Assembly (NCBI RefSeq): GCF_902713615.1
Contig: NC_052160.1
Location: 137,248,737-137,312,736, forward strand
Length of the DNA stretch: 64,000 nucleotides
Reading direction: 5' to 3'
Source of the DNA: Scyliorhinus canicula
Taxonomy: Eukaryota
Shown here: positions 3,101-62,279 of the stretch, one piece after another
How positions within the stretch are numbered: the stretch's first letter is position 1
How the letters are laid out: the number at the start of each line of letters is the position of its first letter
Program-made: the position numbers and the translations under genes
The notes under the pieces: generated by a model
What the model was told of the DNA's origin: nothing
Databases searched by the model: none
What the model saw: the letters and a program-made list of their open reading frames with translations, nothing else

Positions 3101-3139
<39 letters not shown>

Positions 3140-4334: not shown

Positions 4335-4649
4335 CTTCAGATATTTGTAGCTCAACTCCAAATAATATATCCAATCCAGGTTTTTTAATTCCACAGCTGT
4401 ACCATCCTGTATCTTCTGAACGAAGATCCTCCACAGTAACAACAAACATTCTTTCTGCCTTGTTGTCTCTGATCGACATTCTCCCTCTCCGTCCACCTGA
4501 ATCATCTGATTTTACCAAAATGGAGCACCTAATATTCACACCATCGCACCAATATTTCACCTTTTCCCGGTACGCTCCATCATAGTGACAATTTATTGTG
4601 ATCGCTCTTCCCACAATTCCTGTTACTTTCTTTTCTGCCGATAATGCAC
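4335..4649 (-). CDS. Gene A exon 2, CD300/pIgR-type Ig V domain (downstream exons lie left of the window)
   Basis: Same splice sites and four-Cys pattern as 44173-44487; 3 nt differences in 315. Confidence 0.93.
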
Positions 4650-4899
4650 CTGAAACTGAAGAGACACCGTTTCAGAAATTGAACAAAGAAGAATTGTTAA
4701 ATACAAACAGGTACATTTTAACAGAAGTTACTAATGTGTACAGAGGAATCTCTCCAGTTCACCTTCTAATCCAGGAAAATTCCTTCATGTTTTTGATGAA
4801 AACAAACATCAATATCGTGACTTATCACAGCCTCAGGATGTGACAGAGAATTTCACAGTCAATGATTAACTTGTGAAACTTTTGGGGTGTTTTAACTTT

Positions 4900-6900
4900 C
4901 TTGATCCAACAGCAAGAATTGGGCGTTGGTAGTTAGAGGGGTTCATGGAAATCAGGGTTCTGTTGTGTACTGTGATGTTCAACTCTGTTGCATGTGTGCA
5001 ATGTCACTGACTGATTGACAGGCTTGTCTTCAATTAAGGAACAGTGGGAGGACGGCGCAGGACCAAATTGGCCCGCGTCTGTACCACACGGGGTGGATTG
5101 GGGTTGGTTTGCAGAAGGCCGGGTGTCGGGTTGGGTTTGGATTCTGGTTGGGGTGGGGTTGGAGGCCTCGGAGTTGGGCTGTGATGGGTGGCTCAGAGAG
5201 AAGGTGGGTGGGCTTTGTGGGGGTGCGAAAAATAGAGGCTCATTGCTTGGGTTGTCATGTTGGCGCAATTAGCATATCAACCTCATCCTTAGAGGTCACC
5301 TCATTCATCCAACTCACTTGGGCTGTGAATTAAACAAGTCTTTGAACAGGAACAACCAGCCACCCAGAAACTAATCCCTGACAGCTTGACTTTCATCACC
5401 AGTACTGGATTGTGATCCTCCATACAGCTCTCGCCCCCTGGCTTCACAGTGCTGCCTGACTGTATGAGTTCACACTACCTGCAGTCACCCTCCCCTCTGT
5501 GTGATTGTCATCAGACCCCATGAGTCCAGAACAGACCCATTCTCAGAGAGCCCACTTTGCCCCTGTAGCCTGGCCTCCAATGGAATCCCACCAGGGACCT
5601 CACAGCCACCCTCAGTGCTGCCCCTATGGATTCACCCACTCCTACCCCCCTTCCAGCTGCCACTCTGGAGGGGCAATCCCTCAGCGGTGATATCGCCACA
5701 GACCCAGCAAGGAGGGCGCGGCAATCGATGCCAGCACACCAGCCGCCGGACCCCTTTAAATCCAGAGGCTCCCAGACATGAAGGGTAGTGAAGACCTGCG
5801 AGTGACCCTAACTCCTGAGGTCCTGAGGCTGAACCCCACCCACCCCAAGGTGAGCCTATCTGGGTCCCCCCGCGTCCTCGCCACAGCCCCCTCTGCATTG
5901 GCACCCAGAACGCCATGGCGAACTGAGCACTCATCTCCAATATTCCCTTCGGAGGTGAGGTCAGAGGTCAGGCCGGCAGGTTCTCGAACCGTTGCAGCTG
6001 TTGTTAATCACGCCGGCGCGACGTCTCGCCGGAGACCAGTGAATATTCAGTGAGTGAGGACGTCTCGGAGGGTGGAGTCGCTAATGATATTTTAATGATT
6101 ATAAAGAGGTTCCCGGCGTTCCGCAGCAGATATCCCATTACGGTGCCGGCGAGGGGGCTGGAAAACCGGAAATTGTGATCTTGCCGGAGAGAATAGCATT
6201 TTCCGATTCTCGCCGGATTTTCCGCCTCCATCCTCACTGACGGCCAACGTGGGCTCAAAATCACCCCTCTTGGATGGAATCTCGTGTCCTCTCCAGGGCA
6301 CGTTTGGTGGTAGGGGCATTTAATTGGTTGGGAAGTTGGTAAGTGTGGACACTGCCACCTCAGCCCCTCCACTCCTGATTAAATTGTGGGTAGAGAAGCT
6401 GGGAGACAGCCTTGCCACCATGCCACCAATTGTGGGCCAATTAATGCCCACTTAATGGCCTCATCCTGCCACCGCTGGCATGAACCCAGTCGATGGGGGA
6501 CTCACCAGTTAGGGACTCAACAAGCAAACCCCTGTGTGTGGTTGTGGGCTGCGGGTGAGGGTGACATTCCTTCACGGAAAGGCACTCAGGGTCTGAACGG
6601 TGAACCTGGTATTGGGAAGCAGGGGGCTCGCTGATAGCCACACCCCTGCCTGTGTTTCCAACCCTCCATCACCACAACTCCCCTGTAAACCCTCTCCCCT
6701 GATGTCCCTCCCGCCCTCACTCCCCTCTGATGGAGATTCAAATTCCACTCAGAGAGGAAAATGGTGGCTGACATTAAGGAACGGACCTGAAGATGCTGTA
6801 CTTTCAGACCTTGGGAACCATGTGTGGAATATTGTGTCCTGCCCTGTGGCAACTTTGGTGGTAGGGGGCATTTAATTTGGGTGAGAAGGTGGGTGAGAGT
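4900..6900. repeat. Degenerate GC-rich repeat mosaic, probably Harbinger-derived; related to 51520-53100
   Basis: 5421-5490 (catacagctctcgccccctggcttcacagtgctg) matches the reverse complement of ~52140-52210; MITE-like ends near 6140-6230. Confidence 0.4.
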
Positions 6901-6959
6901 ACAGACCCCTTACTGTCTTATATAAGACACGAGTCTGAGACCCAAACTTCGCCCTTCAA

Positions 6960-7550
6960 ACTGAATATGACGTTCTACATGTTATGATCACTTTTACCTG
7001 GAGGCTCTATTAATATAAGGTTATTGATTAATCCTGTCTCATTGTACATTCCCGGGTCTAGAATACCTTTCTCTCTGGTTGGCTCTAGAATATACTGCTC
7101 TTGAAATCATCCAGAACTCACTTTTCAGGTTATCTTTGTCAATCTGATTCACCCAATCCAAATGTAGATGAAGCCACTGATGATTGTTGTGGTACATCTC
7201 TTACACGCTCCATTTATTTCTTCCTGTGCTGTCTGTCCTGCAGTCTAACTATTGTTCAGAGGCTCAGAAGCTACTCAATCAATTTACCTCTTCCCTTTTC
7301 TGTTTTTCAACTCTCCCAGTACTGATTCTATACGTTGTTCTTTTGAGCGAAGGTAATATCTCACCCCTCTGTTAATGAGATTGTTGATTAAACGAGCGAC
7401 CCCACCACCTTTTCTTAGCTTCCTGTCCCTTCAAAATGTCAAATATCCCTCAATAGTCAAGTCCCAACCTTGGCCACTTTGCAACCATGTCGGCAATGGC
7501 TAACAGGTCACAGATATTATATTTTTATCTTCAATAACAATTCTTCCATT
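6960..7550 (-). mobile_element. Old CR1 endonuclease-region fragment
   Basis: The reverse strand resembles CR1 APE-coding sequence; no intact ORF. Confidence 0.45.
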
Positions 7551-9318
7551 TTGTTATGAATGCTGTATATATTTAGATACAGAAGGTGGAAGTTCCCCAA
7601 AATGTGGCTCTGTTAATATTGATGTGAGAATTGGTGCGAATCCTGTCGGCCCTGGGGATGCGATTGGGATACTTGGTGAAAATCCAAATATCCCACGTGA
7701 AAGACGTTGGTGTGAAGTTAGTGCGAATCCTGTCGGCCCTGGGGTCATGATCCAGAGCAAAATTTGTAGCCATTTAGTGGAAAAACAAATTCTCCACGTG
7801 AAAGATGTTGGCGTTGTTGCTCTATAAATAATGTTGGTGAACCACAAGCCTTCTGTTATAACGATCAAATGACCACACAACCAGTTAGCTAGTTCAAAAG
7901 ATGGTTTATTTACATACACAAGAGTTACCTCGACATGCAAACACAAATATCTACTGCGAGTTAAACTACACCTATCAGCTACAATTACCGATACTTAACT
8001 TCAGGGCGACCGGCACTGTGCAAATGGATAAGGCCTTTATCTGGATTTCACTTGGCTGGTTCAAAGAATGTGGCTCTGTCTCTGCTGGGCTCATCTGTCA
8101 GGTAGCAATCGTTGGTCTTGAACTTGGCTGGCTGTTCCTGCTGCAATTGGGTTGGCACAGGCCGGATCCAAAAGAGACAGAACACTTGGCTGTGCTCTCT
8201 TTTATCTCTCTGGGATTTTGCGCTCTTTGGGGTGGTCCTTAACCTTGGACCTAATCATTCGACAGGGCTCTGATCAGTGTCTTCGATTTTGGCCAATAAA
8301 GGGGCGGGTGCCTTGGTGGCTGGGTGGGTCCTTAGCGGTCATTGACTTTGGCAGTTGGGCTTTCTGAATAAGGGGAGTAGCGTCGATCAATCTGTGGCTG
8401 TACCGGTTGCTTGATTGGAGTTCTATTGTCCTGGGAAAATGGGCCATTAAAATGCAAACGAGCAGGGTTTTCGATCAGGCCTGGTTACCTGTGTTTCAGG
8501 TGCACATAGGCTGTGTATCTGTCTGAGACCTGGGTTGGCCATAATTCCCATGGTCCTTTGCAGGTGGCCATCTTCGATGGCTGCAGCGTGAAGCATCTGA
8601 TTCGCCTGCCTCTGGGGGTAATCTGAGCAGTTCTATACCTTCAGCTGATGTGTGATTCTCCGCCCGATCGCAGTTCTCAATTGCAGCCTCATCCCACGGA
8701 GAATTGAGCCCAGAGGCTGGGGAATTTACTGGAACGGTTATTAGACCAATCACCCTGCTGGCTGAGGAACTGAACAGGTGGGGAAAGAGCTAACACTGAA
8801 ACAAGGTAAAGAGACAGAGAGAGATGCAGGAAGGGAAAATATTTAGGAAAAATGTAAGAAGTTGAATGGAAGGGACTTCAGGTCAGAAAAAGGGAGTATT
8901 GAAAGAGGAAGATTGTCACAGACAGATGCACACGTCACTTAAGTGTACAGAAGCACATCAAATATTTTGCATAAAATTGGTAAATTAAAGGCATCGATTT
9001 CTATTTGGAGTTTTGATTAAATGGAATTAATAGAGTCCTGATTCAGAGTAGTGTGATACTGAGTTTAACATTGCGAGATAGAACATAGATTCATCAGTAG
9101 TGGTAGCGTTGATCAAAGATTCCACGGCCGTCTCATTTTCCAGGATTATATAGAGTTAGAGTGAAACATAAAAAGAGAGTTGTTTCTTGTAAAAGAATGT
9201 GAATAAAATCGTTCCCCGTTGGGAGGGAAATATAGATGAACAATCTACCCGTGTCTCACAGAGCCTCATTTATATCGAATACTTTAAACAACCAAAATAA
9301 CTGGAAACTCGTGACATG

Positions 9319-9455
9319 GGCCAGGATTCTCTGGGATTGATACCGGCGGGATTCTCCGATTCCGCTAGAGTGAATGGGGTTTTGGCTGAGTTTCACATTC
9401 TCTGCTCTGTCCGGGAGGGGTAGCCGGGGATAAGCCGAATCAGAGAATCCCGGCC
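9319..9455. mobile_element. 137-bp MITE with GGCC(A/G)GGATTCTCTG terminal inverted repeats and a 3-bp TSD (ATG)
   Basis: TIRs at both ends, ATG on both flanks, and absent from the paralogous site near 48998. Confidence 0.8.
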
Positions 9456-9629
9456 ATGTTCTGTTGTAGAGATCACTAGCAGCACAGTTTTTAGCATCAT
9501 TATATTGGACATTAGATTATATTAAGAAGAATCACATTTTACATGATTTAAACAGATTTCCTTTGTGTTTTGTTTCTTCCACGTGTAGCTTTTTAACTAT
9601 CTAAATTGTCTTTTAATTTTCTATTCACA

Positions 9630-9920
9630 GATAATACAAGGGGTCACGATTTCAAGGTGAGAGGGGAAAAGTTTAAGGGAGATGTGCGTGGAAAGTTTTT
9701 TATGCAGAGGGTGGTGGGTGCCTGGAATGCTTTGCCAGCGGAGGTGGTAGAGGCGGGTACGATAGCATCATTTAAGATGCATCTGGACAGATATATGAAC
9801 GGATGGGGAACAGAGAGAAGTAGACCTTGGAAAATAGGCAACAGGTTTAGATAAAGGATCTGGATCGGCACAGGCTGGGAGGACCAAAGGGCCTGTTCCT
9901 CTGCTGTAATTTTCTTTGTT
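9630..9920 (+). mobile_element. CR1 3' end
   Basis: [24 protein letters not shown] followed by the CR1 tail. Confidence 0.85.
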
Positions 9921-10125
9921 TGTTAATAAATTAATAAATATTTTGGTGTTGCAAAATTCCCGTTAAAATGGACACGACTTCACACAAATGTCATTCATTT
10001 ACCTCTACCTAGTTTCTTGTACTTTTTCATGTTTCCAAGTATTCTAACATCTCTGTTGAGTAAACTGTAGACTAGAATTTAACTAATGCTGATGATCTGA
10101 ATATTCAGCTCGGGCTGTTACTCAC

Positions 10126-10162
10126 CGGGCAGGGAACAGATGAGGAGAATTAGAATCCACAT
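10126..10162 (-). CDS. Gene A exon 1, signal peptide MWILILLICSLP(G)
   Basis: ATG plus hydrophobic run, ending G|gtgagt; paralog of 49720-49756. Confidence 0.87.
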
Positions 10163-10829
10163 CGTTTTATTTGCAGAGGTCAGATTAGAACTTGTCGTCA
10201 GTCGCCCAGCTCATCGTTTTCAGATTGAAATAATTGTGTGAAATAGATTCCAAAGAACTTAAAAGAGGAAGAAGGTAGCAGGAAGTCAGGGTAACGAAAT
10301 TACTGTATCTAACCCTGATGCAATAAGAGCACAGAAGGAAGGACAGGAGTTGACCACACTGCGTCTCGAACCTGCTCCACCATTCAATACTTTCAATCTT
10401 CATCATTTTCCTTAAACCTAGTTTTCTGTCCTCTTCCCATATTCCTTGATTACCTGTGAGGCTAAAACTCTGTGTGTCTGTCTCAGCCTTAAATATCATC
10501 ATGGTTGAAGAGCTTTGTTTTAGTTTGGAGGGGGACCCGCACTTGAAAATAAAAACAAAACAGGAAAGAAAAAGGGAAAGAGAGAAAGGAAACAGATAGA
10601 GCATTCAGAGCCTCCTGGGGTAGAGACTATTGAAAGATTCACATCCCTTTGAGTGAAAAAACTTCTCATCTCATTCCGAAATGATTGGTTCCTCATTGAA
10701 ACTCTGTGCTCGTTTCGGAGATTCTCCAATCGGAGAAACAAACACCCTGTCGGTGTCTCAGGTCCCTTCAGAATCTCATATGTTTCAATGAGGTCACCTC
10801 TCATTCTTCTAAACTCCAGATATGGGGCA

Positions 10830-12262: not shown

Positions 12263-12319
12263 TACCGCACAACGTTAGCCATCTTTCCTGCCCAGCAAAG
12301 GGGAATGGAAATCTGTCAC

Positions 12320-14436: not shown

Positions 14437-14469
14437 TACCTTTACCCAGATTGAATTAGTTTTATAGAA

Positions 14470-15200: not shown

Positions 15201-15232
15201 AAATCCATGAAGGTGTCTAAACACCAGAGATA

Positions 15233-19375: not shown

Positions 19376-19684
19376 TTGTTTGCTAATATGTACAACCTTA
19401 ATAAACAAGCTTAAAGAAAATTGTTCAAATGTTCAAAACTGGATGAGTAATGAATCTTTGATCAGGAGGCAAAATTCCATCAATGTCGATGCAAGCCCAG
19501 AATCGTCATTTCCCCACATTGGATAAGCTGTGAGAACCGGAATCATTGAGTGGCTGGAAAAGACAAACATCAGAATCATTGAGAATGAGAACGATGAATC
19601 AATTGACATTTCAGTTTTGAACAGAATTCTGCAAATGGCAACAAATTGAGACAAAGCTTCTGAAGAAGTGGAGCAGTTTCAGGA

Positions 19685-43800: not shown

Positions 43801-46800
43801 AGCCTCAGACTGAAGAAACGATCATTTAAAACAGGGATGAGGAGGAATTTCTTCAGCCAGATGGTGGTGAATCTGTGGAACTCTGTGCTGCAGAAGGCTG
43901 TGGAGGTCAAGTCACTGAGTGTCTTTAAGACAGATAGATAGGTTGTCGATTAATAAGGGATCGGGGGTTATGATCAGCCATGATTGACTGGCGGAGCAGA
44001 CTCGATGGGCTGAATGGCCTAATTCTGCTCCTATGTCTTATGGTCTTACAACTTGCCACAAATAAACTTCAAAATGTTTCCCTTCAATTCCACCCGTTGT
44101 GTTTCCTCCTGGAGTAAATATTGATCAGACATTTCAGTCGAGATTAACAAAGAAAATCACCAAGAAACGTACCTTCAGATATTTGTAGCTCAACTGCAAA
44201 TAATATATCCAATCCAGGTTTTTTAATTCCACAGCTGTACCATCCTGTATCTTCTGAACGAAGATCCTCCACAGTAACAACAAACATTCTTTCTGCCTTG
44301 TTGTCTCTGATCGACATTCTCCCTCTCCGTCCACCTGAATCATCTGATTTTACCAAAATGGAGCACCTAATATTCACACCATCGCACCAATATTTCACCA
44401 TTTCCCGGTACGCTCCATCATAGTGACAATTTATTGTGATCGCTCTTCCCACAATTCCTGTTACTTTCTTTTCTGCCGACAATGCACCTGAAACTGAAGA
44501 GACACCGTTTCAGAAATTGAACAAAGAAGAATTGTTAAATACAAACAGGTACATTTTAACAGAAGTTACTAATGTGTACAGAGGAATCTCTCCAGTGCAC
44601 CTTCTAATCCAGGAAAATTCCTTCATGTTTTTGATGAAAGCAAACATAAATATCGTGACTTATCACAGCCTCAGGATGTGACAGAGAATTTCACAGTCAA
44701 TGATTAACTTGTGAAACTTTTGGGGTGTTTTAACTTTCTTGATCCAACAGCAAGAATTGGACGTTGGTAGTTAGAGGGGTTCATGGAAATCAGGGTTCTG
44801 TTGTGTACTGTGATGTTCAACTCTGTTGCATGTGTGCAATGTCACTGACTGATTGACAGGCTTGTCTTCAATTGGGGAACAGTGGGAGGATGGTGCAGGA
44901 CCAAATTGGCCCGCGTCTGTACCACACGGGGTGGATTGGGGTTGGTTTGTAGAAGGCCGGTGGTCGGGGTTGGATTTGGATTCTGGTTGGGGTGGGGCTG
45001 GAGGCCTCGGAGTTGGGCTGTGATGGGTGGCTCAGAGAGAAGGTGGGTGGGCTTTGTGGGGGTGTGAAAAATAGAGGCTCATTGCTTGGGCTGTCGTGTT
45101 GGTGTCTTCGTGCAAGGGTCTGGGAGCTGATCAGACAACAGGTTTCCCCTTGTGTAAGGCGAGTCATTCCTGATTGATGTGCGCAATTAGAATATCAACA
45201 TCATCCTTAGAGGTCACCTCATTCATCCAACTCACTTGGGCTGTGAATTAAACAAGTCTTTGAACAGGAACAACCAGCCACCAGGAAACTAATCACTGAC
45301 AGCCTGGCCTTTATAACCAGTCCTGGACCTTGATCCTCCATACAGCTCTCGCCCCCTGGCTTCACAGTGCTGCCTGACTGTATGAGTTCACACTCACTGC
45401 AGTCACCTCCCCCCCCCCCCCCCCCCACCCCCACCCCCGTGTGAAAGTCTTCAGACCCCATGAGTCCAGAACAGACCCATTCTCAGAGGGCCCACTTTGC
45501 CCCTGTAGCCTGGCCTCCAATGGAATCCCACCAGGGACCTCACAGCCACCTTCAGTGCTGCCCCTGTGGATTCACCCTCACCCACTTTCCAGCTGCAACT
45601 CTGGAGGGGCAATCCCTCAGCGGTGATATCGCCACAAACCCAGCAAGGAGGCACAGGAATCACTGCCAGCACACCAGCCGCCGGACCCCTTCAAATCCAG
45701 AGGCTCCCAGACATGAGGGGCCGCGAAGACCTGCGAGTGACCCTAACTCCTGAGGTCCTGAGGCTGAACCCCACCCACCCCAAGATGAGCCTATCTGGGT
45801 CCCCCGCGTCCTCGCCACAGACCCCACTGCATTGGCACCCAGAATGCGATGGCGACCCGAGCACTCATCTCCGATATGCCCTTCGGAGCTGAGGTCGGAG
45901 GTCAGGCCGGCAGGTTCTCGAACCGTTGCAGCTGTTGTTAATCACGCCGGCGCGACGTCTCGCCGGAGACGAGTGAATATTCAGTGAGTGAGGACGTCTC
46001 GGAGGGAGGTGGGCTCAAAATCACCCCTCTTGGATGGAATCTCGTGTCCTCTCCAGGGCACGTTTGGTGGCAGGGGCATTTAATTGGTTGGGAAGTTGGT
46101 AAGTGTGGACACTGCCACCTCAGCCCCTCCACTCCTGAATAAATTGTGGGTAGAGAAGCTGGGAGACAGCCTTGCCACCATGCCACCAATTGTGGGCCAT
46201 TTAATGCCCACTTATTGGCCTCATCCTGCCACCGCTGGCATGAACCCAGTCGATGGGGGACTCACCAGTTAGGGACTCAACAAGCAAACCCCTGTGTGTG
46301 GTTGTGGGCTGCGGGTGAGGGTGACATTCCTTCACGGAAAGGCACTCAGGGTCTGAACGGTGAACCTGGTATTGGGAAGCAGGGGGCTCGCTGATAGCCA
46401 CACCCCTGCCTGTGTTTCCAACCCTCCATCACCACAACTCCCCTGTAAACCCTCTCCCCTGATGTCCCTCCCGCCCTTACTCCCCTCTGATGGAGATTCA
46501 AATTCCACTCAGAGAGGAAAATGGCGGCTGACATTAAGGAACGGACCTGAAGGTGCTGTACTTTCAGACCTTGGGAACCATGTGTGGAATATTGTGTCCT
46601 GCCCTGTGGCAACTTTGGTGGTAGGGGGCATTTAATTTGGGTGAGAAGGTGGGTGAGAGTACAGACCCCTTACTGTCTTATATAAGACACGAGTCTGAGA
46701 CCCAAACTTCGCCCTTCAAACTGAATATGACGTTCTACATGTTATGATCACTGTTACCTGGAGGCTCTATTAATATAAGGTTATTGATTAATCCTGTCTC

Positions 46801-49756
46801 ATTGTACATTCCCGGGTCTAGAATACCTTTCTCTCTGGTTGGCTCTAGAATATACTGCTCTAGAAATCATCCAGAACTCACTTTCCAGGTTATCTTTGTC
46901 AATCTGATTCACCCAAACCAAATGTAGATGAAGCCACTGATGATTGTTGTGGTACATCTCTTACACCCTCCATTTATTTCTTCCTGTGTTGTCTGTCCTA
47001 CAGTCCAACTATTTTCCGGAGGCTTAGAAGCTACTCAATCAATTTACCTCTTCCCTTTTCTGTTTTTCAACTCTCCCAGTACTGATTCTACACGTTGTTC
47101 TTTTGAGCGAAGGTAATCTCTCACCCCTCTGTTAATGAGATTGTTGATTAAACGAGCGACCCCACCACCTTTTCTTAGCTTCCTGTCCCTTCAAAATGTC
47201 AAATATCCTTCAATAGTCAAGTCCCAACCTTGGCCACTTTGCAACCATGTCGACAATGGCTAACAGGTCACAGATATTATATTTTTATCTTCACTAACAA
47301 TTCTTCCATTTTGTTATGAATGCTGTATATATTTAGATACAGAGGATGGAATTTCCCCAAAATGTGGCTCTGTTAATATTGATGTGAGAATTGGTGCGAA
47401 TCCTGTCGGCCCTGGGGTCATGATCCGGAGCACAATTTGTAGCCATTTGGTGGAAAAACAAATTCTCCACGTGAGATATGTTGGCGTTGTTGCTCTGTAA
47501 ATAATGTTGGTGAACCACAAGCCTCCTGTTATATCGATCAAATGACCACACAACCAGTTAGCTAGTTCAAAAGATGGTTTATTTACATACACAAGAGTTA
47601 CCTCGACATGCAAACACAAATATCTACTACGAGTTAAACTACACCTATCAGCTACAATTACCGATACTTAACTTCAGGGCGACCGGCACTGTGCAAATGG
47701 ATAAGGCCTTTATCTGGATTTCACTTAGCTGGTTCGAAGAAAGTGGCTCTGTCTCTGCTGGGCTCATCTGTCAGGTAGCGATCGTTGGTCTTGAACTTGA
47801 CTGGCTGTTCCTGCTGCAATTGGGTTGGCACAGGCCGGATCCAAAAGAGGCAGAACACTTGGCTGTGCCCTCTTTTATCTCTCTGGGATTTCGCGCTCTC
47901 TGGGGAGGTCCTTAACCTTGGACCTAATAATTCGACAGGGCTCTGATCAGTGTCTTCGATTTCGGCCAATAAAGGGGCTAGTGCCTTGGTGACTGGGTGG
48001 GTCCTTAGTGGTCATTGACCTTGGCTGTTGGGCTTTCTGATTGAGGGGAGTAGCGTCGATCAGTCTGTGGCTGTACCGATTGCTTGAGTGGAGTTCTATT
48101 GTCCTGGGAAAATGGGCCATTAAAATGCAAACGAGCGGGGGTTTCAATCAGGCCTGGTTACCTGTGTTTCAGGTACACATAGGCTGTGTATCTGTCTGAG
48201 ACCTGGGTTGACCATAATTCCCATGGTCCTTTGCAGGTGGCCATCTTCAATGGCTGCAGCGTGAAGCATCTGATTCGCCTGCCTCTGGGGGTAATCTGAG
48301 CAGTTCTATACCTTCAGCTGATGTGTGATTCTCCGCCCGATCGCAGTTCTCAATTGCAGCCTCAGCCCACGGAGAATTGAGCCCAGAGGCTGGGGGAATT
48401 TACTGGAACGGTTATTCGACCAATAACCCTGCTGGCTGAGGAACTGAACAGGTGGGGGAAGAGCTGACACTGAAACAAGGTAAAGAGACAGAGAGTGGAG
48501 CAGAAAGGAAAAATATTTAGGAAACATTTAAGAAGTTGAATGGAATGGACAAGAGCTCAGGTCAGAAAAAGGGAGTATTGAAAGAGGAAGATTGTCAACA
48601 GACAGATGCACACGTCACTTAAATGTACAGAAGCACATCATATATTTTTTGAATAAAATTGATAAATTAAAAGCATCGATTTCTATTTGGAGTTTTGATT
48701 AAATAGAATTAATAGAGTCCTGATTTAGAGCAGTGTGTTACTGAGTTTAACATTGCGAGATAGAACATAGATTCATCAGCAGTGGTAGCGTTGATCAAAG
48801 ATTCCACGGCCGTCTCATTTTCCAGGATTATATAGAGTTAGAGTGAAACATAAAAAGAGAGTTGTTTCTTGTAAAAGAATGTGAATAAAATCGTTCCCCG
48901 TTGGGAGGGAAATGTAGATGAACAATCTACCCGTGTCTCACAGAGCCTCATTTATATTGAACACTTTAAACAACCAAAATAACTGGAAACTCGTGACAGT
49001 TCTGTTGCAGAGATCACTAACAGTACAGTTTTCAACATCATTATAGAACATAGAACAGTACAGCACAGAACAGGCCCTTCGGCCCTCGATGTTGTGCCGA
49101 GCAATGATCACCCTACCTAAACCCACGTAACCTGTATACCCGTAACCCAACAATCCCCCCATTAACCTTACACTACGGGCAATTTAGCATGGCCAATCCA
49201 CCTAACCCGCACATCTTTGGACTGTGGGAGGAAACCGGAGCACCCGGAGGAAACCCACGCACACACGGGGAGGACGTGCAGACTCCACACAGACAGTGAC
49301 CCAGCCGGGAATCGAACCTGGGACCCTGGAGCTGTGAAGCATTGATGCTAACCACCATGCTACCGTGAGGCCCATTATATTGGACATCAGATTATGAAGA
49401 ATCACCTTTTACACATTTAAAACAGATTACCTTTTTGCTTTGTTTCTTCCTCGATTAGCTTTTTAATTAATTAAATTGATATTTAAATGTTCTATTCACA
49501 GTTAATAATAAAGTTTACTGCGTGTTAATAAATATTTCTGTGTTACAATAATCCCGTTGAAAGGGACACGACTTCATACAAATTTCATTTGTTTATCTCT
49601 ACCTAGTTTCTTGTGCTTTTACATGTCTCCAAGTATTCTAACATCTCTGTTGAGTAAACTGTAGACTAGAATTTAACTAATGCTGATGATCTGAATATTC
49701 AGCTCGGGCTGTTACTCACCGGGCAGGGAACAGATGAGGGGAATCAGAATCCACAT
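19685..49756 (-). CDS. Gene B: spliced Ig-superfamily immune-type receptor (leader-V-C2-stalk-charged TM-short tail), predicted 322 aa from 6 exons
   Basis: Exons 49720-49756, 44173-44487, 37622-37945, 36464-36539, 22334-22424 and 19685-19810 total 37+315+324+76+91+126 = 969 nt. All introns are GT-AG with phases 1,1,1,2,0, and the frame is open throughout. The terminal exon is the least certain. Confidence 0.8.
20103..20485. mobile_element. hAT (Charlie-like) MITE with 8-bp TSD GATTACAC, carrying a SINE tail fragment (~20221-20400)
   Basis: Perfect 16-bp TIR CAGGGGTGGGCAAACT/AGTTTGCCCACCCCTG; TSD on both sides. Confidence 0.9.
20950..21720 (+). mobile_element. Gypsy integrase C-terminus remnant plus probable 3' LTR (~21532-21720)
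   Basis: [32 protein letters not shown] resembles the W.PG.V...GP.SY.V...RRH.DQL motif; TGTTG...AATAAA...CACA block follows. Confidence 0.5.
21755..22245. mobile_element. hAT MITE with 8-bp TSD CCAATATC
   Basis: Imperfect TIR CAGGGCCGGC/GCCGGCGCTG, subterminal GCCCGGGGCGCC repeats, TSD at 21747-21754 and 22246-22253. The paralogous intron near 62110 lacks it. Confidence 0.85.
22334..22424 (-). CDS. Gene B exon 5, transmembrane segment [30 protein letters not shown]
   Basis: ttttcctcag| acceptor, AAG|gtgagc donor, 91 nt. Hydrophobic helix with Asp and Arg; a paralogous exon lies at 62178-62268. Confidence 0.85.
23342..25120 (-). mobile_element. Outer CR1, 3' half (RT domain and tail)
   Basis: [10 protein letters not shown]...PQGSVLGP...FADD; one TGG>TAG stop at 24258-24260; (TTCTATG)n tail. 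Confidence 0.95.
25121..26118 (+). repeat. 35-bp tandem array, ~28 copies (GGACATTGAAAASAGCGCGAGAGG[TA/AG]AGACAGYYR)
   Basis: Unit starts at 25121, 25156, 25191 and onward; no unique spacers. Confidence 0.97.
26402..27316 (+). CDS. CR1 ORF1p (zinc finger, coiled coil, SGNH/GDSL esterase), open 304 aa
   Basis: ATG at 26402; CSSC...[31 protein letters not shown]. Confidence 0.88.
   Translation: MAGKVVQCSSCRMFEVRDAVSVPADFTCRKCSQLQLLQDRVMVLELELDELRIIREAEVVIDRSFREVVTPKTGDRWVTVRGIGKKQFPAVVPLSNKYTVLDTCGGDDLPGVSHGVRDSSTESVPVAQKGRGERSRALVIGDSIVRGTDRRFCGSERDSRLVCCLPGARVSDVSDRVFRVLKGEGEQPQVVVHIGTNDIGRKGDKDVRQAFRELGWKLRARTNRVVISGLLPVPRDSETRNREREQLNTWLQGWCRREGFRFLDNWGSFWGRWDLYRQDGLHLNLSGTNILGGRFVSTLWGGLN
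27433..30182 (+). pseudogene. CR1 ORF2 (APE + RT) with three frameshifts (~28300, ~29115, ~29680-29710)
   Basis: Four overlapping track ORFs carry consecutive APE, RT ([12 protein letters not shown]) and C-terminal motifs. Confidence 0.93.
30277..32546 (-). mobile_element. Outer CR1, 5' half (5'UTR, ORF1 32409-31474 with one nonsense codon at 32185-32187, APE endonuclease from 31357)
   Basis: CSSC..CGKC zinc finger, coiled coil, SGNH esterase (GDSIVRG, HIGTND, DGLHLN); [12 protein letters not shown]. It ends YRYIKNK, contiguous with TRVRLG at 25120. Confidence 0.93.
33012..33176. repeat. ~165-bp palindrome made of two head-to-head Penelope-type terminal fragments with a hammerhead ribozyme core
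   Basis: Arms 33012-33093 and ~33095-33176 are near reverse complements. Minus strand reads CUGACGA-AGGAGC-UAC-GCUCC-GAAAGCUA. Confidence 0.7.
33960..34745 (+). mobile_element. 5'-truncated L1-clade LINE 3' end with G-rich 3'UTR
   Basis: [17 protein letters not shown] (CCHC), RRILLGW, WL.DL..FL.MEK...RG...F...W motifs. Confidence 0.8.
35328..35626 (+). mobile_element. V-SINE head with an alternative (ATT)n tail
   Basis: HE1-like head and core; the 3' block is shared with the SINE at 15233. Confidence 0.8.
36464..36539 (-). CDS. Gene B exon 4, Ser/Thr/Pro-rich stalk ([25 protein letters not shown])
   Basis: gtttcaacag| acceptor and CCA AG|gtacaa donor. It enters in phase 1 and exits in phase 2, exactly bridging the C2 exon and the phase-2 TM exon. 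Confidence 0.75.
36640..37070 (-). mobile_element. CR1 3' end
   Basis: [14 protein letters not shown]...[10 protein letters not shown] plus tail. Confidence 0.85.
37622..37945 (-). CDS. Gene B exon 3, Ig C2 domain (FcR-like/PECAM-like) with a Cys-bearing C-terminal extension
   Basis: ttcccacag|AA TCC GTG acceptor, AAT G|gtaagt donor, 324 nt, phase 1-1. Motifs [20 protein letters not shown] and [10 protein letters not shown]; sequons NVS and NCS. Confidence 0.88.
38400..38660 (+). repeat. 19-bp minisatellite (ATAGGATTGTGTACCATCT) inside a LINE 3' fragment (~38300-39180)
   Basis: Period 19 at 38520, 38539, 38558 and 38577. Confidence 0.85.
38898..39120 (-). mobile_element. V-SINE (A-rich tail type) with 16-bp TSD CCCACCATCTTTTTAA
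   Basis: TSD at 38882-38897 and 39121-39136. Confidence 0.88.
39537..43165 (+). mobile_element. Harbinger-derived element, paralogous copy including its probable left end
   Basis: Same Myb remnant as 670-2000, with degenerate GGGYGYGAT-like termini near 39537 and 43160. Confidence 0.5.
44173..44487 (-). CDS. Gene B exon 2, Ig V domain of CD300/pIgR/TREM type
   Basis: tttcag| acceptor, GAA G|gtacgt donor, 315 nt, phase 1-1. Contains INC, YWC..C (second disulfide typical of CD300/pIgR) and DTGWYSCG. Confidence 0.93.
49046..49372 (-). mobile_element. Full-length V-SINE present only in duplication copy 2, TSD CATTATA
   Basis: TSD at 49039-49045 and 49373-49379; empty site at ~9497-9504. Confidence 0.92.
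49720..49756 (-). CDS. Gene B exon 1, signal peptide [12 protein letters not shown](G)
   Basis: ATG followed by a hydrophobic run, ending CCC G|gtgagt (phase 1). It joins the V exon to give ...[11 protein letters not shown]. Confidence 0.85.
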
Positions 49757-50204
49757 CGTTTTATTTGCAGAGGTCAGATTAGAACTTGTCGTCAGTCGCC
49801 CAGCTCCTCGTTTTCAGATTGAAATAATTGTCTGAAATAGATTCCAAAGAACTTAAAAGAGGAAGAAGGCAGCTGGAAGTCAGGGTAATGAAATTACTGT
49901 ATCTAACCCTGATGCAATAAGAGCAGCAGAAGGAAGGACAGGAGTTGACCACACTGCGTCTCGAACTTGCTCCACCATTCAATACATTCAATCTTCATCA
50001 TTTTCCTTCAACCCAGTTTTCTGTCCTCTTCCCATATTCCTTGATTACCTGTGAGGCTAAAACTCTATGTCTGTCTCAGCCTTAAATATCATCTTTGAAG
50101 AGCTTTGTTTTTTTTTGAGGCGCACCCTCACTGGAAAAGAAAAACAAAACAGGAAACAGAAAAAGGGAAACAGACAAAGGAAACCGATTGAGCATTCAGA
50201 GTCT

Positions 50205-50530
50205 GGGTAGCATTGTGGACAGCTCCAGGGTCCCAGGTTCGATTCCGGCTTGGGTCTGTGCGGAGTCTGCACATCCTCCCCGTGTGTGCGTGGGTTTCCT
50301 CCGGGTGCTCCAGTTTCCTCCCACAGTCCAAAGATGTGCAGGTTAGGTGGATTGACCATGATAAATTGCCCTTAGTGACCAAAATTTCCCTTAGTGTTGG
50401 ATGGGGTTACTGGATTATGGGGATAGGGTGGAGGTGTTGACCTTGGGTAGGATGCTCTTTCCAAGAGCCGGTGCAGACCCGATGGGCCGAATGGCCTCCT
50501 TCTGCACTGTAAATTCTATGATTCTGTGAT
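50205..50530 (+). mobile_element. V-SINE present only in duplication copy 2
   Basis: Flanks rejoin to match ~10610-10620. Confidence 0.8.
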
Positions 50531-50644
50531 TCACCTAGGGTAGAAAATATCTGAAGATCCACGTGCCTTTGAGTGAAGAATCTTCCTGGATTCTCATTCC
50601 CGTCGGCAGCGCACTCCTACCTATATGTTTATCCGCATCGTGGG

Positions 50645-51116
50645 TGTTGTGTTATGCTTCTTGATGTAGCATAAGATGCTTCCTTGATGCGTACTCTGAC
50701 AAAGGAAGGTTGAGACTTGGAGATAGCTTTAACACATTTATTAAACTATTAACAATTCTCCTACTTGAGTTTGACTCTCCTGTCAATCTCCCCATAGCTG
50801 CTCAGACCAACTAACCAGTCTGCTACAATCCACGTGATGGTGTGATGCTTCTGATCTGCCCCTGTCTGTACTCACTAAGTGTTGCCAGTGGAAAGAGACT
50901 GAGCATGTGTGCTCTGTCCTTTTATATGGTGATGTGTAATGCCTCCTTGTGGTTCCTCCGCGTGTCTTGACTAACCATTGGTTGTGTCCTGTCTTACTGC
51001 CCTATTGGTTGTATGTCTGTGTGTCACGATGTCTCTGGTGCTCCCTCTAGTGTCTAGCTAGGTGTGGTGTATGTACATTAACCCCTTGTGTATTTACAGT
51101 GATGCATATGACCACA
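50645..51116 (-). mobile_element. Solo LTR with 5-bp TSD GTGGG, inserted in a MITE
   Basis: TGTTG...CCACA termini; GTGGG at 50640-50644 and 51117-51121. Confidence 0.75.
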
Positions 51117-53119
51117 GTGGGTGGGGGGGGGGGGGGGGGGGGGGGGGGGCTTCAATGGGAAATCCCATTGGCAAGTGGTGGGAGTAGAGAGTTCCTTCAC
51201 CAGCGAATGGCGCGCGGTCGAGATACACGTGCTGGGGGATCGGAAAATCCTGCCCTTCATCCCATTCCTAAATGATTACTTCCCTGTTGAAACGCTGTGC
51301 CCCGTGTTTGCGACTCTCCAATCGGAGAAACAAACTCTCAGTGCGTTCAGCCCCTTCAGAATTTCATCTGTTTGAATTGGACCACCTCTCATTCTTCTAA
51401 ACTCCAGAGAGTAGAGGCCCAATTGGACTCCACCTGTCTTCTTCGGGCAGGCCTCCAATCTCAGGAACCAAGCCAGTGAACATTTCCTCCACCACCTCCA
51501 ATGCAACGTGTCCCTCCCTAAATATGGAGAATAAAATTGCGCGCAGTATTCTTGGGTGTGATATTGAGCCCGCGTTAGCTGCCAGTAGGAATGGTGACGC
51601 GGGCGGGAAATTCAGCAGGAATTGGAAACACAATTTTCTCCAGCAAGATCACGATATCCAACTTTCCTGGCCCCATTACCCTCCAGGGTGAGCGCTCAGA
51701 TCACCATTACCCTTCAGGGTGCCAGTCACACAATGGGCAATGGAGAGGATGCTTGGGATCCAGATAGGTTACGCCCTGGGCCTGGTGGGTGGGTTGGGTT
51801 CAGTCTCAGGATCTCCATGGGTCCATTCACTCGCACACCTTCGCGGCCCTTCATGTCTGCGAACCTCTAGGTGTAAAGGAGTTTGGAGGCTAAAGGCAGT
51901 GATTCCCATGTCCTTCTTGCTGGGATTGTGGTGGTATCACCGCCGAGGTATTGCCCTTCCAGAGGGGCAGCTGGAAAGTGGACGGGAGCAGATGAATCAA
52001 CAGGGTCAACACTGAGGGTGACTAAGGTTCTTGGGTGGGGTCCCGGGAGAGGCCAGGCTGTATGGGCAGACTGGGGAACTCTGACAAGGGGTGGTTTCCA
52101 GCTTCACGAGGCCTAAAGTCCCTCAAACAGGGGGCAAAACTCCTGCAGTGAGAGTGAACCCCCACACTCAGACAGCACTGTGAAGCCTGAGGGCACAAGC
52201 TGTATGGAAGTTCAAGGCCGCTGGTTATGGTGACCAGGCCGCCGGGGGTAGTGTCCGGGTGACTGGCTGTTCCAGTTGGAAGGGTCATTTAATCCGTAGC
52301 CCATGGGAGCTGGAGAATGAGGGTTCCCTCTAAGGATGAAGTTGACATGCTCATTTCAGTCTTCACATGAATCAGTTGTGCCTCGCCTGACCACAAGGGG
52401 AAGCCAATTTCAGCTCCCTGACCCTTTCACGGTGAGTCAATTGTACCAATTTAGTCAGCATCGAAATGCATGTATGCCACTGATAGGCACCCAATTGTCA
52501 ACGCCCTCTGCTGCAGCTGCTGTCTCTGCTATGATCTGCTGTTACTGTGCTGTCTTTTTTTTGTCTGGGAGAAGGACCTGCTATCTGGGGCAGGAGGAGG
52601 CTATCACTGCCTTCACCTGAATCCCTACGGGTGAAAGGACAGTGTTTCTCCTCTTTAACCTCTGAAGCCTGTGGCCGAGGGAGGAATAAGTATCTGTGAC
52701 TGCTTGATTTCAACAACAATTACAGAGGCCTCAGACCTGAGGCCTGGAGACCTCACAGCCCTCAGGAGGGGGAGGAGCAGAAGGACTGTAATACAACAGC
52801 TGCAAGGAGAGGCAGTGACCCAGAATCCAGCCGACCCTAGTTAATCCCACCAAGGCGTGAGTGTCTGCGGTGGTGGAGGGTGCGGGTGACTGCTGTGACG
52901 CCTCCTTCATGCTTCCCTCCGAATTGTCTATCATGGAGCTCCTCGGGTCTGTTGTCTCCAGAGGGTGCGAGATGATCGACTGGTTGACCTGCAAAGGGAG
53001 TGAGAGGGCATTAATGCATCACAGGGGATAACTGATGGGAGAAAGGTGTTGCTGTGCTGCCCTCCTCTGTGTGTGGGAGGTGTGTGCAGGCCTCAACTAT
53101 GACTGTATATTTTGAGAGT

Positions 53120-54499: not shown

Positions 54500-54645
54500 T
54501 GCCCGTGTCTATGTATTTACATTGTGTATTTATGTTGCCCTATGTATTTTTCTCATGTTTGGAATGATCTGTCTGAACTGTTGGCAGAACAATGCTTTTC
54601 ACTGTATCTCGGTACACGTAACAATAAACACATCCAGTCCAATAT
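54500..54645 (+). mobile_element. L2-type LINE 3' tail
   Basis: aacaatgcttttcactgtatctcggtacacgtaacaataaa. Confidence 0.5.
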
Positions 54646-55777: not shown

Positions 55778-56007
55778 TTTTTAAAAATAAATTTAGAGTA
55801 CCCAATTATGTTTTTTTCCAATTAAGGGGCAATTTAGCGGAGCCAATCCACCTATCCTGCACATCTTTTGGGTTGTAGGGGGTGATATCACGCAGACACG
55901 GGGAGAATGTGCAAACGCCACACGGACAGTGACCCGGGGCCAGGATTCGAACCCGGGTCCTCAGCGCCGTAGGCAGCAATGCTAACCACTGTGCCATCAT
56001 GCTGCCC
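55778..56007 (-). mobile_element. V-SINE (A-rich tail type) with 16-bp TSD TTAATTTGCCGTTTAC
   Basis: TSD at 55762-55777 and 56008-56023. Confidence 0.88.
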
Positions 56008-57065
56008 TTAATTTGCCGTTTACCTCGGCAGGACCACATTATCCCGCAGGGTGTGACGGACAGTAAAATCCTGATCAACGGCTTCACTTTGCAGTACTTT
56101 CTTGGTACCCATTTTTAGTTAATCAAGGAATGAAAGTGGGGCAAGCAGTCTGACGGCACAGAGAAAGCAAAGGGGTCAACAGAGATGGTGGTCGGGCGGC
56201 ACGGTGCTTAGCAATGCTACCTCACAGCGCCCAGGACCTGCGTTTGATCCCAGCCCCGGATCACGGTCCATGTGTAGTTTGCACATTCTTCCCCATGTCT
56301 GCGTGATATCACCCCCCCACAACCCAAAAATGTGCAGAGTAGGTGGTTTGGCCACGCTAAATTACCTGATTAATTGGGGGGGAAATGGGTAACTTAATTT
56401 AAAAAACAGAGATGGATGTCAATAAGGGGATCAAGCTCCATCCTCAAAACTGTGCTTTGTAGCATGTGCTACCTCCTCACAAGTGTAAACCAGATTTTTT
56501 TAAATAAAAAGAAAATCATAGCAAAATAAAATTATGATAATATTGGATTTGCTAAAATAATGAAAAGCACAATCTTATTTGTATCAGTGGGTCTCCCTGT
56601 CTTCTACTGTTAGACAGGTACGTTCTTCCATCTCAGATAAACGCATAAGTTATTATTGAGCAACTGGTTTCCAATGAATGAGTGATTCAAGTTGCCAATT
56701 TCCTCACAGAATATTGTTCGTGATACGTACAAGCTTAAAAAATAACTCAAAATCTATGACCAAAAAATGAGCAAGAAGTCAAGTCAGGCAACCAGAAGGT
56801 TTTCCGATGAATCCCCAAAATGGAGATGGAGCGACCGCAACATAAAAGTTCCAGCTGTCGTTTTTTGCTTTTGATTCTTCCTGCAGCAATTTAATGGTCA
56901 AAATGATTTGATAACAAAATGCATTTTATTATGTACAATCGGTGGAGAAAAAGTTTAAAACTGGACTCAGATGCAAGCAGTGAATCTTCAAGTTGTCGCG
57001 TTGGTCACGTTGTGAGCATCTGATTCAGTGAGAGACTGGAAAAGAGGACATTTCATGCATCAGGT

Positions 57066-57314
57066 TCAATACGATCGGGAATGACTGGCTGTGTTCCATG
57101 TCAGTTCCGAACAGGATTTTGCAACTGGCAGAAAATTGAGGAAAAGCTTGTGAGGAGCTGGAGCTCTCTTGGGATCACACCTTCTCCCACCCCCATCCCA
57201 CCCATTGCATTTGTGCTGGGTAAAGGTGCCAGGTATGTCCGTCTGCAAGGGGTGTACCGCCAATTTTTCGAAGGGAACGAATGTTTCCCGGCAGTTGTGG
57301 TGATCCACAAGAGT
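57066..57314 (-). pseudogene. Gene C region homologous to the gene B terminal exon
   Basis: HNCRETF..EK..H..Q.D....F.QH.CNG aligns with the gene B tail. The position matching the B acceptor reads CTG instead of CAG. Confidence 0.4.
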
Positions 57315-57529
57315 CAGAAAAAAATATTAACATGACAGCTTTATTCAATACATTCCAGTCGAGCTTCACAGCAACAATAGCATCGCTGCCTGTACCTGTA
57401 AGATTTGGTTTCAAGTGGATCAATTTTAGTCCCCGTGTTCTTTTAGAAAACAATTGTTGCTCATGTCTGATAGTAATGTGCTTTATGTTTTCACCTTTCC
57501 CATTTCATTCATAGTGATTGTTTTATAAC

Positions 57530-60105: not shown

Positions 60106-60400
60106 CGCCTTGAACCTGTTACGCCATTCAACTGGATCATGACTAAATTGTGGGTCAACTCCATTCACCTGCTATTGATTCATAGCCTTCCATATCCTGA
60201 CTCAATGAATATCTATTGATCTCAGTAGCGTATATTTTAATTAACCCAGCGTGCAAATGCTTTGGATGAGATGTAATTTAAAAATGTAATTTAGCTCACT
60301 TAAAAATGTAATTTAGCTCAGTTGGCTAGACAACTGGTTTGTGATGCAGAATGAAGTCAACAGTGTGGGTTCAATCCCCATACCAGCTCATGTTATTTAC

Positions 60401-60727
60401 GGGCAACACGGTAGCATGGTGGTTAGCATAAATGCTTCACAGCTCCAGGGTCCCAGGTTCGATTCCCGGCTGGGTCACTGTCTGTGCGGAGTCTGCACGT
60501 CCTCCCCATGTGTGCGTGGGTTTCCTCCGGTTTCCTCCCACAGTCCAAAGATGTGCGGGTTAGGTGGATTGGCTATGCTAAATTGCCCGTAGTATCCTAA
60601 AAAGTAAAGGTTGGGGGGGGGGTTGTTGGGTTACGGGTATAGGGTGGATACGTGGGTTTGAGTAGGGTGATCATTGTTTGGCACAACATTGAGGGCCGAA
60701 GGGGCTGTACTGTTCTACGTTCTATGA
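60401..60727 (+). mobile_element. Full-length V-SINE with CR1-type tail
   Basis: Same consensus as 12357-12694. Confidence 0.9.
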
Positions 60728-61669
60728 GACGGGCCTGAATTTTTACTGCAATAAAGAGCCTCTGCCTCATAGCAAAGATGGTTGACGAGCCCTGAAATCG
60801 GAAGCCTGCATCTGAACACACACGTTTTTCATTTGAGGAAGCAAAGTACATTACTGTCCACTTCTAATGTGTGTGAAATTGCATGCTGTCTTCAAGTAAG
60901 TGATAATTTGTGTAAAGACAGTGAAAGGGGATGGAGTGACTTGGGACATGGAAGGGGAGAGTGAGCCACGAATATTTGCATTAATTTTTGATTGATTTAG
61001 GTGTGTAAATGCCCCAACGTGTGTATGTTACACCCAGCATTTCACCTCTTAGCCTTTTGATAACAGCTACGTGTAGTGGATTATTTGTCCTCCATGTGAA
61101 TTCACAGGCTTTGCAACTAGATGGCAGCAAATACACCCTCTGCTGTTGCAGCATTGGGCAAAACCCTCCTGTACTGGAATCACAAACAGCATCACTGCAT
61201 CTACTTGTATCATATCGATCCTCTGAATCATTTTCAATAGCTCAATCAACTCACCCTTCCAGGTTTATGCAGTCAGTTGTCTTAATTTAACCCTTTAAAC
61301 CCTGGAATAATTCTGGTAAATTTACATTGCTCCCTTTCCAAAGACAATAGCGAAAATCTTCCAGCCTTTCCCACTGTGGGATCTTCCGGTCCTGCCTACG
61401 GCGACTGTCATAACCCCCGCGAAGATTATATCTAAACATAGCACGAGCAATATCATAGTTGATGGTGTGCGACCTCCAGCCAGCAGGTGGTGGTACAGGC
61501 ACACCTTGCGCTCTCCAGACCAAGGCCATGTGACCTGGGACCCGGATATAAAGGGAGACACATCCAGTCATCCTGAGAAGAAGATTGAGAGGGTAATAAG
61601 ATGTACATGTAATTGGCCAATGGACTGGAATGTGGAGGAGTTGAGGTTCTAATCAGATCAGCCTGAACT

Positions 61670-61900
61670 TATGAATTTAAATTTTTTTTTAGAGTACTCA
61701 ATTCATTTTTTCCAATTAAGGGGCAATTTAGTATGGCCAATCCACCTACCCTGCACATCTTTGGGTTGTGGGAGTGTAACACACAAAGACACGGGGAGAA
61801 TGTACAAACTCCACACAGACAGTGACCCGGGGCTTGGATCGAACCTAGGAACTCGGCGCCGTGAGGCAGCAGTGCTAACCACTGAGCCACCGTGGTGCCC
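61670..61900 (-). mobile_element. V-SINE (A-rich tail type); similar copies at ~54700-54850 (-) and ~56193-56405 (+)
   Basis: tRNA head, V core, ttggaaaaaatgaattgagtactc tail. Confidence 0.85.
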
Positions 61901-62177
61901 TGTGATCTTATTAAATGGCAGAGCTGAGTGGCTTACTCTTGATCCTAATGCATATCTTTATAGGTATGTATATTCGTATTAATACGGAGCCTACTTGATT
62001 TTCCTACATGATATCAGTAATACTTGAAAACTAACTCATTTTGGCTGCAAAACTCTTTGATTCATCCTGACAACATGAATGGATTAATGAAATTGCAAGT
62101 TTCCCTTTACAATATCTGTGATCAATGTCATTTGAAAGAATTTCTGGAACGATTCAGATATTGTTCACAGTGGCTAC

Positions 62178-62268
62178 CTTATACTTTCCCGTGCACCATA
62201 TGACTGAAACAGTATAAATCACCATGAGAGCAAAGAGCACCCAGTGAATCACAACCCAGATAATGTAA
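62178..62268 (-). CDS. Gene C transmembrane exon YIIWVVIHWVLFALMVIYTVSVIWCTGKYK (upstream exons right of the window; possibly a pseudogene)
   Basis: 91-nt paralog of 22334-22424 with 14 differences; ctcag| acceptor and a weak AAG|gtagcc donor. Confidence 0.75.
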
Positions 62269-62279
62269 CTGAGCAAAAA

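Follow-up and report, generated by a model that had tools for sequence, protein, structure and literature searches.

Does the stretch of the catshark genome considered here encode one immunoglobulin (Ig) receptor or several, and, if several, how did they come to resemble one another? The window that we analysed comprises 64,000 nt of Scyliorhinus canicula DNA (RefSeq assembly GCF_902713615.1, contig NC_052160.1, positions 137,248,737 to 137,312,736 of the forward strand). The public annotation places in it the front part of a single gene model, P0214 ('Fc receptor-like protein 5 [Scyliorhinus canicula]', 613 aa), and an earlier note on the same DNA read it as three head-to-tail paralogs. Our account, which we consider very likely to be correct, is that the window holds three genes of the MDIR (CD300/pIgR-like) family, in whole or in part and all on the minus strand: the front of an inhibitory gene, A; an activating gene, B, which is complete, has a mosaic structure and is paired with A; and the last exons of a third gene, C.

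The two leader-plus-V pairs and the two transmembrane (TM) exons that the earlier note had placed on the minus strand, at offsets of about 39.6-39.8 kb, are where it had put them, save that the V exons start 6 nt away. Its three paralogs survive as three Ig-receptor genes on the same strand, but not as three comparable copies: only the front of A and the back end of C are present alongside the complete B, the V exons in the window number two, with no third, and A is of an inhibitory type, whereas B and C are short-tail types.

Gene B and the four-Ig public model

Gene B consists of six exons spread over 30.25 kb, which join in compatible phases into one open reading frame (ORF) of 298 aa; the ag/gt sites are canonical at all the exons of A, B and C listed in Table 1. 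The product comprises a signal peptide, a V domain, an FcRL-like second Ig domain (Ig2), a stalk of the O-glycan type, a TM helix that contains Asp and Arg, and a tail of 18 residues devoid of Yxx[ILV] motifs. This is a type I receptor of activating design, which presumably signals through an adaptor of the FcR-gamma or DAP12 type that carries an immunoreceptor tyrosine-based activation motif (ITAM). No exons encoding a tail with immunoreceptor tyrosine-based inhibitory motifs (ITIMs) were found for B in the window, even at E-values up to 5.

Evidence of transcription comes from Logan contigs labelled '?' or 'RNA?', with four runs aligned to 35500-38300 at an identity of at least 98%. The joint between the Ig2 and stalk exons of B (37621 to 36538, GT..AG on the minus strand) is present in a 699-nt contig of run X8 and in a 368-nt contig of run X15. 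Contigs that contain the stalk run on into 22390-22419, within the TM exon of B, exactly in X12 and with one mismatch in X8 (past the stalk, the aligner extended the match by 5 nt into the intron, GTACA and TTACA being one letter apart). Towards the 5' end, a contig of X8 leads from Ig2 back into 44175-44204, the end of the V exon with the GCA codon of B, a text that does not occur in A. Four studies contribute eight small assemblies in which words from the tail exon and 3' untranslated region (UTR) of B (19370-19560) are recovered at fractions of 0.72-1.00; with 0.39 as the lower limit, the listed rows number twelve, from seven studies. With 57-232 million letters each, the eight assemblies are far too small for the genome of the species, and hence are RNA-like. 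We conclude that gene B is transcribed and spliced as a V-Ig2-stalk-TM(D/R) message of its own. Its 298-aa product was not returned by a word-based search of the protein collection with the paralog P0083, a 304-aa activating receptor of S. canicula encoded elsewhere in the cluster; such an absence is not proof, and we regard gene B as an unannotated, expressed activating receptor.

The public model includes only the front half of this gene. P0214 maps to the leader, V and Ig2 exons of B, then to the V exon of A, and then, off the window, to another Ig2, a stalk/TM segment and a cytoplasmic tail, omitting leader A as well as the stalk, TM and tail exons of B. The range given for this gene model measures 63,884 nt, so that its last coding exon falls about 14.1 kb to the left of the window. 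The tail contains three ITIM-like motifs (IAYAVL, VTYSGI and AVYANV), with their tyrosines 29 and 30 residues apart. Judging by the sequence of P0214, gene A would thus continue beyond the window as a receptor of the inhibitory type, with an Ig2 domain, a stalk/TM segment and a three-tyrosine tail. Leader A is intact and is accompanied by 0.65 kb of conserved upstream sequence, and gene A probably uses it. In a 57-nt contig of run X18, the end of Ig2 is followed directly by AACTGGATATTAT, whose translation, GTGYY, is a piece of the P0214 stalk from outside the window; since this stalk is of the A type, the Ig2-to-stalk junction of A must be transcribed as well. We conclude that the RefSeq four-Ig model merges the front half of B with gene A, i.e. 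that it fuses two genes.

Alternatively, RefSeq may be right, and one inhibitory MDIR gene with four Ig domains extends over 64 kb, leader A and the stalk, TM and tail exons of B being relics within a 33-kb intron. P0214 indeed maps exactly as such a one-gene model, two or three V-Ig modules are present in the skate entries for MDIR3 (P0228) and MDIR5 (P0157), and the neighbouring P0219 has likewise been modelled with four Ig domains; the two skate entries are said to derive from cDNA, in the work of Cannon and colleagues of 2006. Nevertheless, we consider a single gene unlikely. The spliced contigs pass from Ig2(B) to stalk(B) and on to TM(B), the terminal exon and UTR of B are found in the RNA-like assemblies, leader A is preserved together with its upstream sequence, and the counterpart in Scyliorhinus torazame has a single module. 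Furthermore, V-exon text is absent from all the listed loose ends at the donor of Ig2(B) (24 more are outside that list).

Several points weigh against our account of separate genes. The splice from Ig2(B) to V(A) is part of the public model and is phase-compatible, donor and acceptor each being of phase 1. The stalk-to-TM(B) join is a continuation of contigs rather than a joint aligned within one stretch, and we infer both the RNA origin of the aligned Logan contigs, from their GT..AG joints, and the use of leader A. A fused B-A read-through isoform could exist as a minor form next to the separate messages.

If two genes are indeed present, the public record is to be corrected in that an expressed activating receptor of 298 aa is concealed within a 64-kb "FcRL5-like" gene. 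The gene counts of the MDIR family in shark genomes could then be put right. If A and B are, moreover, the homogenised pair proposed below, other automatic four-Ig models of sharks and rays named 'pIgR-like' or 'FcRL5-like', in which two near-identical V-Ig modules follow each other, e.g. P0219, may hide pairs too. P0219 itself (LOC119978458 of S. canicula) lies off the window, 9.9 kb downstream of the P0083 gene, and its two V-Ig modules are the closest relatives of each other in the V-domain tree (support 99/99); either a genuine gene with two modules or one more fusion of neighbouring genes may underlie this model.

Two minor observations concern the transcripts of B. In the TM helix, the X8 contig reads W-V-L instead of W-G-L, and it has 3 differences from the TM of C; the change is either an allele of B or the product of assembly cross-talk with a paralog. 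Words of the B tail and 3'UTR (19370-19560) also occur in runs from one study that are labelled as a different organism (organism C), at 0.50 in three runs and at 0.39 in the fourth; as these runs contain about half of the words, a near-identical exon exists in a related species.

Family identity

MDIR genes form a multigene family of activating and inhibitory receptors in skate and zebrafish, with features of CD300, TREM, FCAR and pIgR (PMC3031540). Both V exons in the window match the Pfam V-set domain (1e-10), and their matches in the PDB are to the domains of pIgR (E 2.7e-44 summed over three), to CD300f, CD300a and CLM-6, which rank highest among the single-domain matches (E 1e-17 to 1e-21), and then to NKp44 and TLT-1; the V domain possesses the additional Cys pair (WC...C) expected of an MDIR. 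It is followed by a domain of the C2/I type, completing the V-Ig module that is characteristic of the family: the Ig2 exon, which the contigs show joined to V on one side and to the stalk on the other, matches Pfam Ig_2 (27.6 bits against a cutoff of 27) and Ig_3, as well as FcRL5 (9loc, E 7.9e-38 summed over four domains). Activating and inhibitory members stand side by side, B with its D/R TM and 18-aa tail and A with its three ITIM-like motifs, as they do among MDIRs. With paralogs from S. canicula and S. torazame as queries, the skate UniRef entries 'Modular domain immune-type receptor 2/3/5' are matched with E-values of 1e-71 to 1e-197, and the MDIRs of the clearnose skate are 55% identical to B in the V domain and 59-68% identical in Ig2. 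We conclude that the window is a part of the catshark MDIR cluster; the family, like the principle of paired receptors, is already known, and no new kind of system is revealed here.

MDIR1-5 were reportedly first described in skate, by Cannon and colleagues in Immunogenetics (volume 58, page 362). The catshark genes share with them the combination of a CD300/pIgR-type V domain with a C2/I-type Ig domain, the coexistence of activating forms (charged TM, short tail) with inhibitory forms (ITIM tail), and the multigene organization. They differ in being lineage-specific paralogs, the V domains of skate forming a clade of their own in the tree, and in the TM motif, which is D..R rather than K..R. 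In the catshark, moreover, the genomic DNA reveals a matched pair, A and B, together with its mosaic structure.

The other names under which such genes are known describe the domains rather than the proteins. Shark and ray matches carry automatic names such as 'pIgR-like', 'FcRL5' and 'CMRF35-like'. With the mammalian CD300 (CMRF35-like) family, the catshark genes have in common the extra Cys pair of the V domain and the occurrence of activating and inhibitory members in one cluster, for instance CD300A and CD300C, whose Ig domains are near-identical; however, the ectodomain of a CD300 protein consists of one V domain, to which no FcRL-like Ig domain is added, and CD300 proper can be rejected because the second Ig exon is present here and spliced in. 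A family of the leukocyte receptor complex, with Ig domains of the C2 type only, was rejected on account of the N-terminal V-set domain. The comparison with the CD300 or leukocyte receptor clusters made in the earlier note consequently gives way to MDIR (V plus FcRL-like Ig). The name FcRL5 was rejected too, as a V domain leads the protein and only Ig2 is FcRL5-like. pIgR is composed of V-like domains in series and ends in a long sorting tail, and FcRL5 is built of serial C2-type domains and lacks a V domain at its N-terminus; the catshark V resembles the former and Ig2 the latter, but the architecture fits neither, and the public names reflect domain-level similarity only.

Mosaic anatomy of gene B and its possible origin

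The front parts of A and B are young copies of each other. Self-BLAST aligns 1-5263 with 39927-45102 at E = 0 and continues in colinear blocks to 10613/50204; two further pieces lengthen the homology to 10820/51408, if insertions of 329 nt and 671 nt in the right-hand copy are allowed for. Aligned with MAFFT, the two copies are 94.8% identical over 10,217 columns, with most 500-column windows at 96-98.6% and with 17 indels of at least 15 nt. The block begins at position 1, so that its left end lies outside the window, and reaches about 0.65 kb upstream of leader A. At the level of DNA, the likeness comprises this upstream segment, the leader, the V exon and the introns, and at the level of protein it includes Ig2 and the stalk as well. 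The leaders differ at 2 of 37 nt and the V exons at 3 of 321 nt (2 amino acids); two of these 5 differences in 358 nt are synonymous and three are not.

Domain by domain, B changes its allegiance. Compared with A, it is identical at 105/107 positions of V (98%), 101/108 of Ig2 (94%) and 23/26 of the stalk (88%), and its TM and tail find no match. Compared with P0083, the identity is 62% in V, 87% in Ig2 and 38% in the stalk, but 42/45 (93%) in the TM and tail, the 30-residue TM exon being identical. Gene C shares only this latter part with B in the window: the TM exons agree at 85% of 103 nt (E ~1e-27), with 39 nt of the adjacent intron in a colinear piece, the terminal exon regions are 66% identical over 331 nt, and the proteins are 57% identical in the TM and tail. 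In the tree of V domains, A and B are sisters (100/97), the next branch is S. torazame 0002162 (P0167; 100/99), an inhibitory receptor that has one module and an identity of 81-85% to A and B, and P0083 is distant. Directly after the stalk donor of B, residues 441-504 of P0214 align to 36546-36343 with about 46% identity over 68 residues, which identifies an in-frame, shortened and heavily diverged TM/juxtamembrane segment of the inhibitory type. These sequence comparisons show that B is a mosaic, whose ectodomain is a very recent copy of that of A and whose TM and tail come from an older activating lineage common to P0083 and C.

The two genes are neighbours, with near-identical ectodomains attached to opposite signalling modules (ITIM type in A, D/R type in B), which is the arrangement of paired receptors. 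We conclude that A and B are such a pair, with nearly the same ligand-binding face connected to opposite signals; they would presumably share a ligand.

How could such a pair arise? We tentatively favor, as possible rather than probable, a scenario in which A and B became an inhibitory/activating pair through recent homogenisation, the whole ectodomain region (about 15 kb) of an old activating gene having been overwritten by its inhibitory neighbour. An older activating gene would already have been located about 40 kb upstream of A, equipped with the stalk-plus-relic exon and with exons for the D/R TM and the tail. Once the lineage had separated from S. torazame, the 5' region of this older gene would have been replaced by that of A, in a tract beginning about 0.65 kb ahead of the leader and ending near the stalk; the most likely mechanism would be non-allelic recombination or conversion over a long tract. 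The cluster as such evolves by birth-and-death. Two considerations speak against this scenario: a conversion tract of about 15 kb is long for interlocus conversion, and the 3' end of the young A/B homology is known from protein identities alone.

A simpler explanation would be tandem duplication of whole genes with a unit of about 40 kb, A, B and C being equivalent copies of different ages. It would agree with the same-strand orientation of the three genes and with three near-equal offsets (39,594 for the leaders, 39,838 for the V exons and 39,844 for the TM exons). We nonetheless regard it as very unlikely. The tail exons are offset by 37,482 rather than by 39.8 kb; the likeness of A to B and that of B to C are found in different halves of the gene; and the intervals 10821-39926 and 51409-64000 have nothing in common beyond interspersed repeats and the exons for the TM and tail. 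Moreover, intron 4 of B contains about 9 kb of long interspersed nuclear element (LINE) copies, and an exact old period is unlikely to have survived such insertions. In view of this LINE load and of the tail offset, the near-equality of the TM offset (B/C) with the V offset (A/B) is probably coincidental. Both simple tandem duplication and recent unequal crossing-over were rejected, because they call for young homology over the full 40 kb and also between the last two exons (TM and tail) of B and those of C, where we find only repeats and identities of 66-85%. The TM remnant in B is, in addition, far more diverged than the approximately 3% of the young block, and the young homology is absent from the intergenic DNA and from the 3' exons of B and C, neither of which fits a recent duplication of the whole unit or a simple unequal crossover. 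The proposal of the earlier note that the array consists of young (A/B) and older (B/C) duplicates compares different halves of the gene, since the former likeness is confined to the 5' part of the gene and the latter to two 3' exons. Its broader idea of a cluster evolving by birth and death fares better: the genes are multiple, on the same strand, and bear signs of birth and decay (the degenerate TM remnant of B and the lost TM charges of C), but they do not exhibit a simple 40-kb duplication.

The high identity of A and B might also suggest that a single locus has two haplotypes, one with an inhibitory and the other with an activating allele (compare KIR3DL1/3DS1), and that these were wrongly assembled in tandem. 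This is the explanation to which we give the least credence. The window contains no N, so both copies belong to one gap-free stretch, in which 29 kb of unrelated sequence, with the expressed 3' exons of B itself among it, lies between them, and messages of both the A type and the B type exist. A divergence of about 3-5%, with 17 indels of at least 15 nt (the insertions of 329 and 671 nt among them), seems above allelic expectation, although this is judged without a heterozygosity figure for the species.

The homogenised pair that we propose instead has well-known parallels. In KIR, LILR/PIR, SIRP and PILR, too, near-identical ectodomains are found in adjacent genes with exchanged TM and tail parts, and with decayed remnants of an inhibitory TM; these systems differ in that they belong to other Ig families, while the present one is from a cartilaginous fish. 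Three points are new here: gene B, which is expressed but missing from the annotation; evidence for the fusion of two genes in the four-Ig model of RefSeq; and the mosaic make-up of a matched shark pair, which would offer a clean case, in cartilaginous fish, of an activating/inhibitory pair generated by recombination between neighbours in a cluster. It is tempting to consider that, if this is true, the evolution of paired receptors in an arms race, of the KIR/LILR/SIRP style, was already in place in cartilaginous fish. From a practical point of view, the pair would be useful for ligand hunting, with one ectodomain serving two receptors.

Feature coordinates, gene C and repeats

The positions of all exons and of the two copies of the homology block are collected in Table 1. 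Each V exon has two tandem acceptors 6 nt apart (cttcag/TTTCAG/GT, at 4649-4655 and 44487-44493). The upstream one is the choice of the public model and of all homologs, and gives a protein that reads LPVSGAL; the downstream one, if used, would remove Val-Ser after the signal peptide.

Table 1. Exons and related features of genes A, B and C in the 64,000-nt window (positions counted from its first letter)
Feature	Coordinates	Strand	Description and evidence
Gene A, leader exon	10126..10162	-	37 nt, ATG at 10162, MWILILLICSLP, phase 1, gtgagt donor
Gene A, V exon (CD300/pIgR-type IgV)	4335..4655	-	Pfam V-set 1.7e-10; P0214 residues 226-334 map at 99%
Gene B, leader exon	49720..49756	-	37 nt, ATG at 49756, gtgagt donor; P0214 residues 1-12 map at 100%
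Gene B, V exon	44173..44493	-	Pfam V-set; PDB matches to pIgR and CD300 domains
Gene B, second Ig exon (Ig2), FcRL-like C2/I type	37622..37945	-	tblastn, Pfam Ig_2 and Ig_3, PDB FcRL5 9loc E 8e-38; contigs at least 98% identical
Gene B, Ser/Thr/Pro-rich stalk exon	36464..36539	-	canonical ag/gt and phase; joint with Ig2 in contigs
Gene B, intronic degenerate inhibitory-type TM/juxtamembrane remnant	36343..36463	-	in frame, directly after stalk donor, spliced out
Gene B, TM exon	22334..22424	-	Asp and Arg in outer third of helix; protein identical to P0083 TM
Gene B, last coding exon	19506..19553	-	PLNDSGSHSLSNVGK, then stop; 3'UTR to at least 19370
Gene C, TM exon	62178..62268	-	YIIWVVIHWVLF; Val and His at the Asp and Arg positions of B
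Gene C, last coding exon	56988..57035	-	SLTESDAHNVTNATT, then stop; 66% nt alignment with B tail region
Young A/B homology block, A-side copy	1..10820	-	self-BLAST, MAFFT; leader, intron 1, V, part of intron 2
Young A/B homology block, B-side copy	39927..51408	-	extra 329-nt and 671-nt insertions upstream of leader B

Only the two 3' exons of C are found in the window, with their splice sites and reading frame intact and with both charged residues of the TM lost. The tail exon of C falls within none of the genes listed up to 10 kb upstream of P0214. The intron upstream of the TM exon of C contains a tandem array of at least 46 units of 22 nt (93% matching), which extends from 62984 to 64000 and runs off the right edge of the window.

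Within the 14-kb intron 4 of B, much of the space is filled by two inverted LINE copies (23348-32528, with arms 80-84% identical), whose ORFs match GDSL-type esterase, the endonuclease/exonuclease/phosphatase family and reverse transcriptase. One of the copies ends in a tandem array of 28.7 units of 35 nt (25121-26125). About 450 nt upstream of the Ig2 exon of B there is another array, of 13 units of 19 nt (38399-38657). Finally, intron 2 of both A and B includes a GC-rich block (62% GC; 1-2000 and 40000-42000) with a plus-strand ORF of 379 aa (727-1866) that has no match in Pfam, and which may be a repeat or a CpG-rich element.

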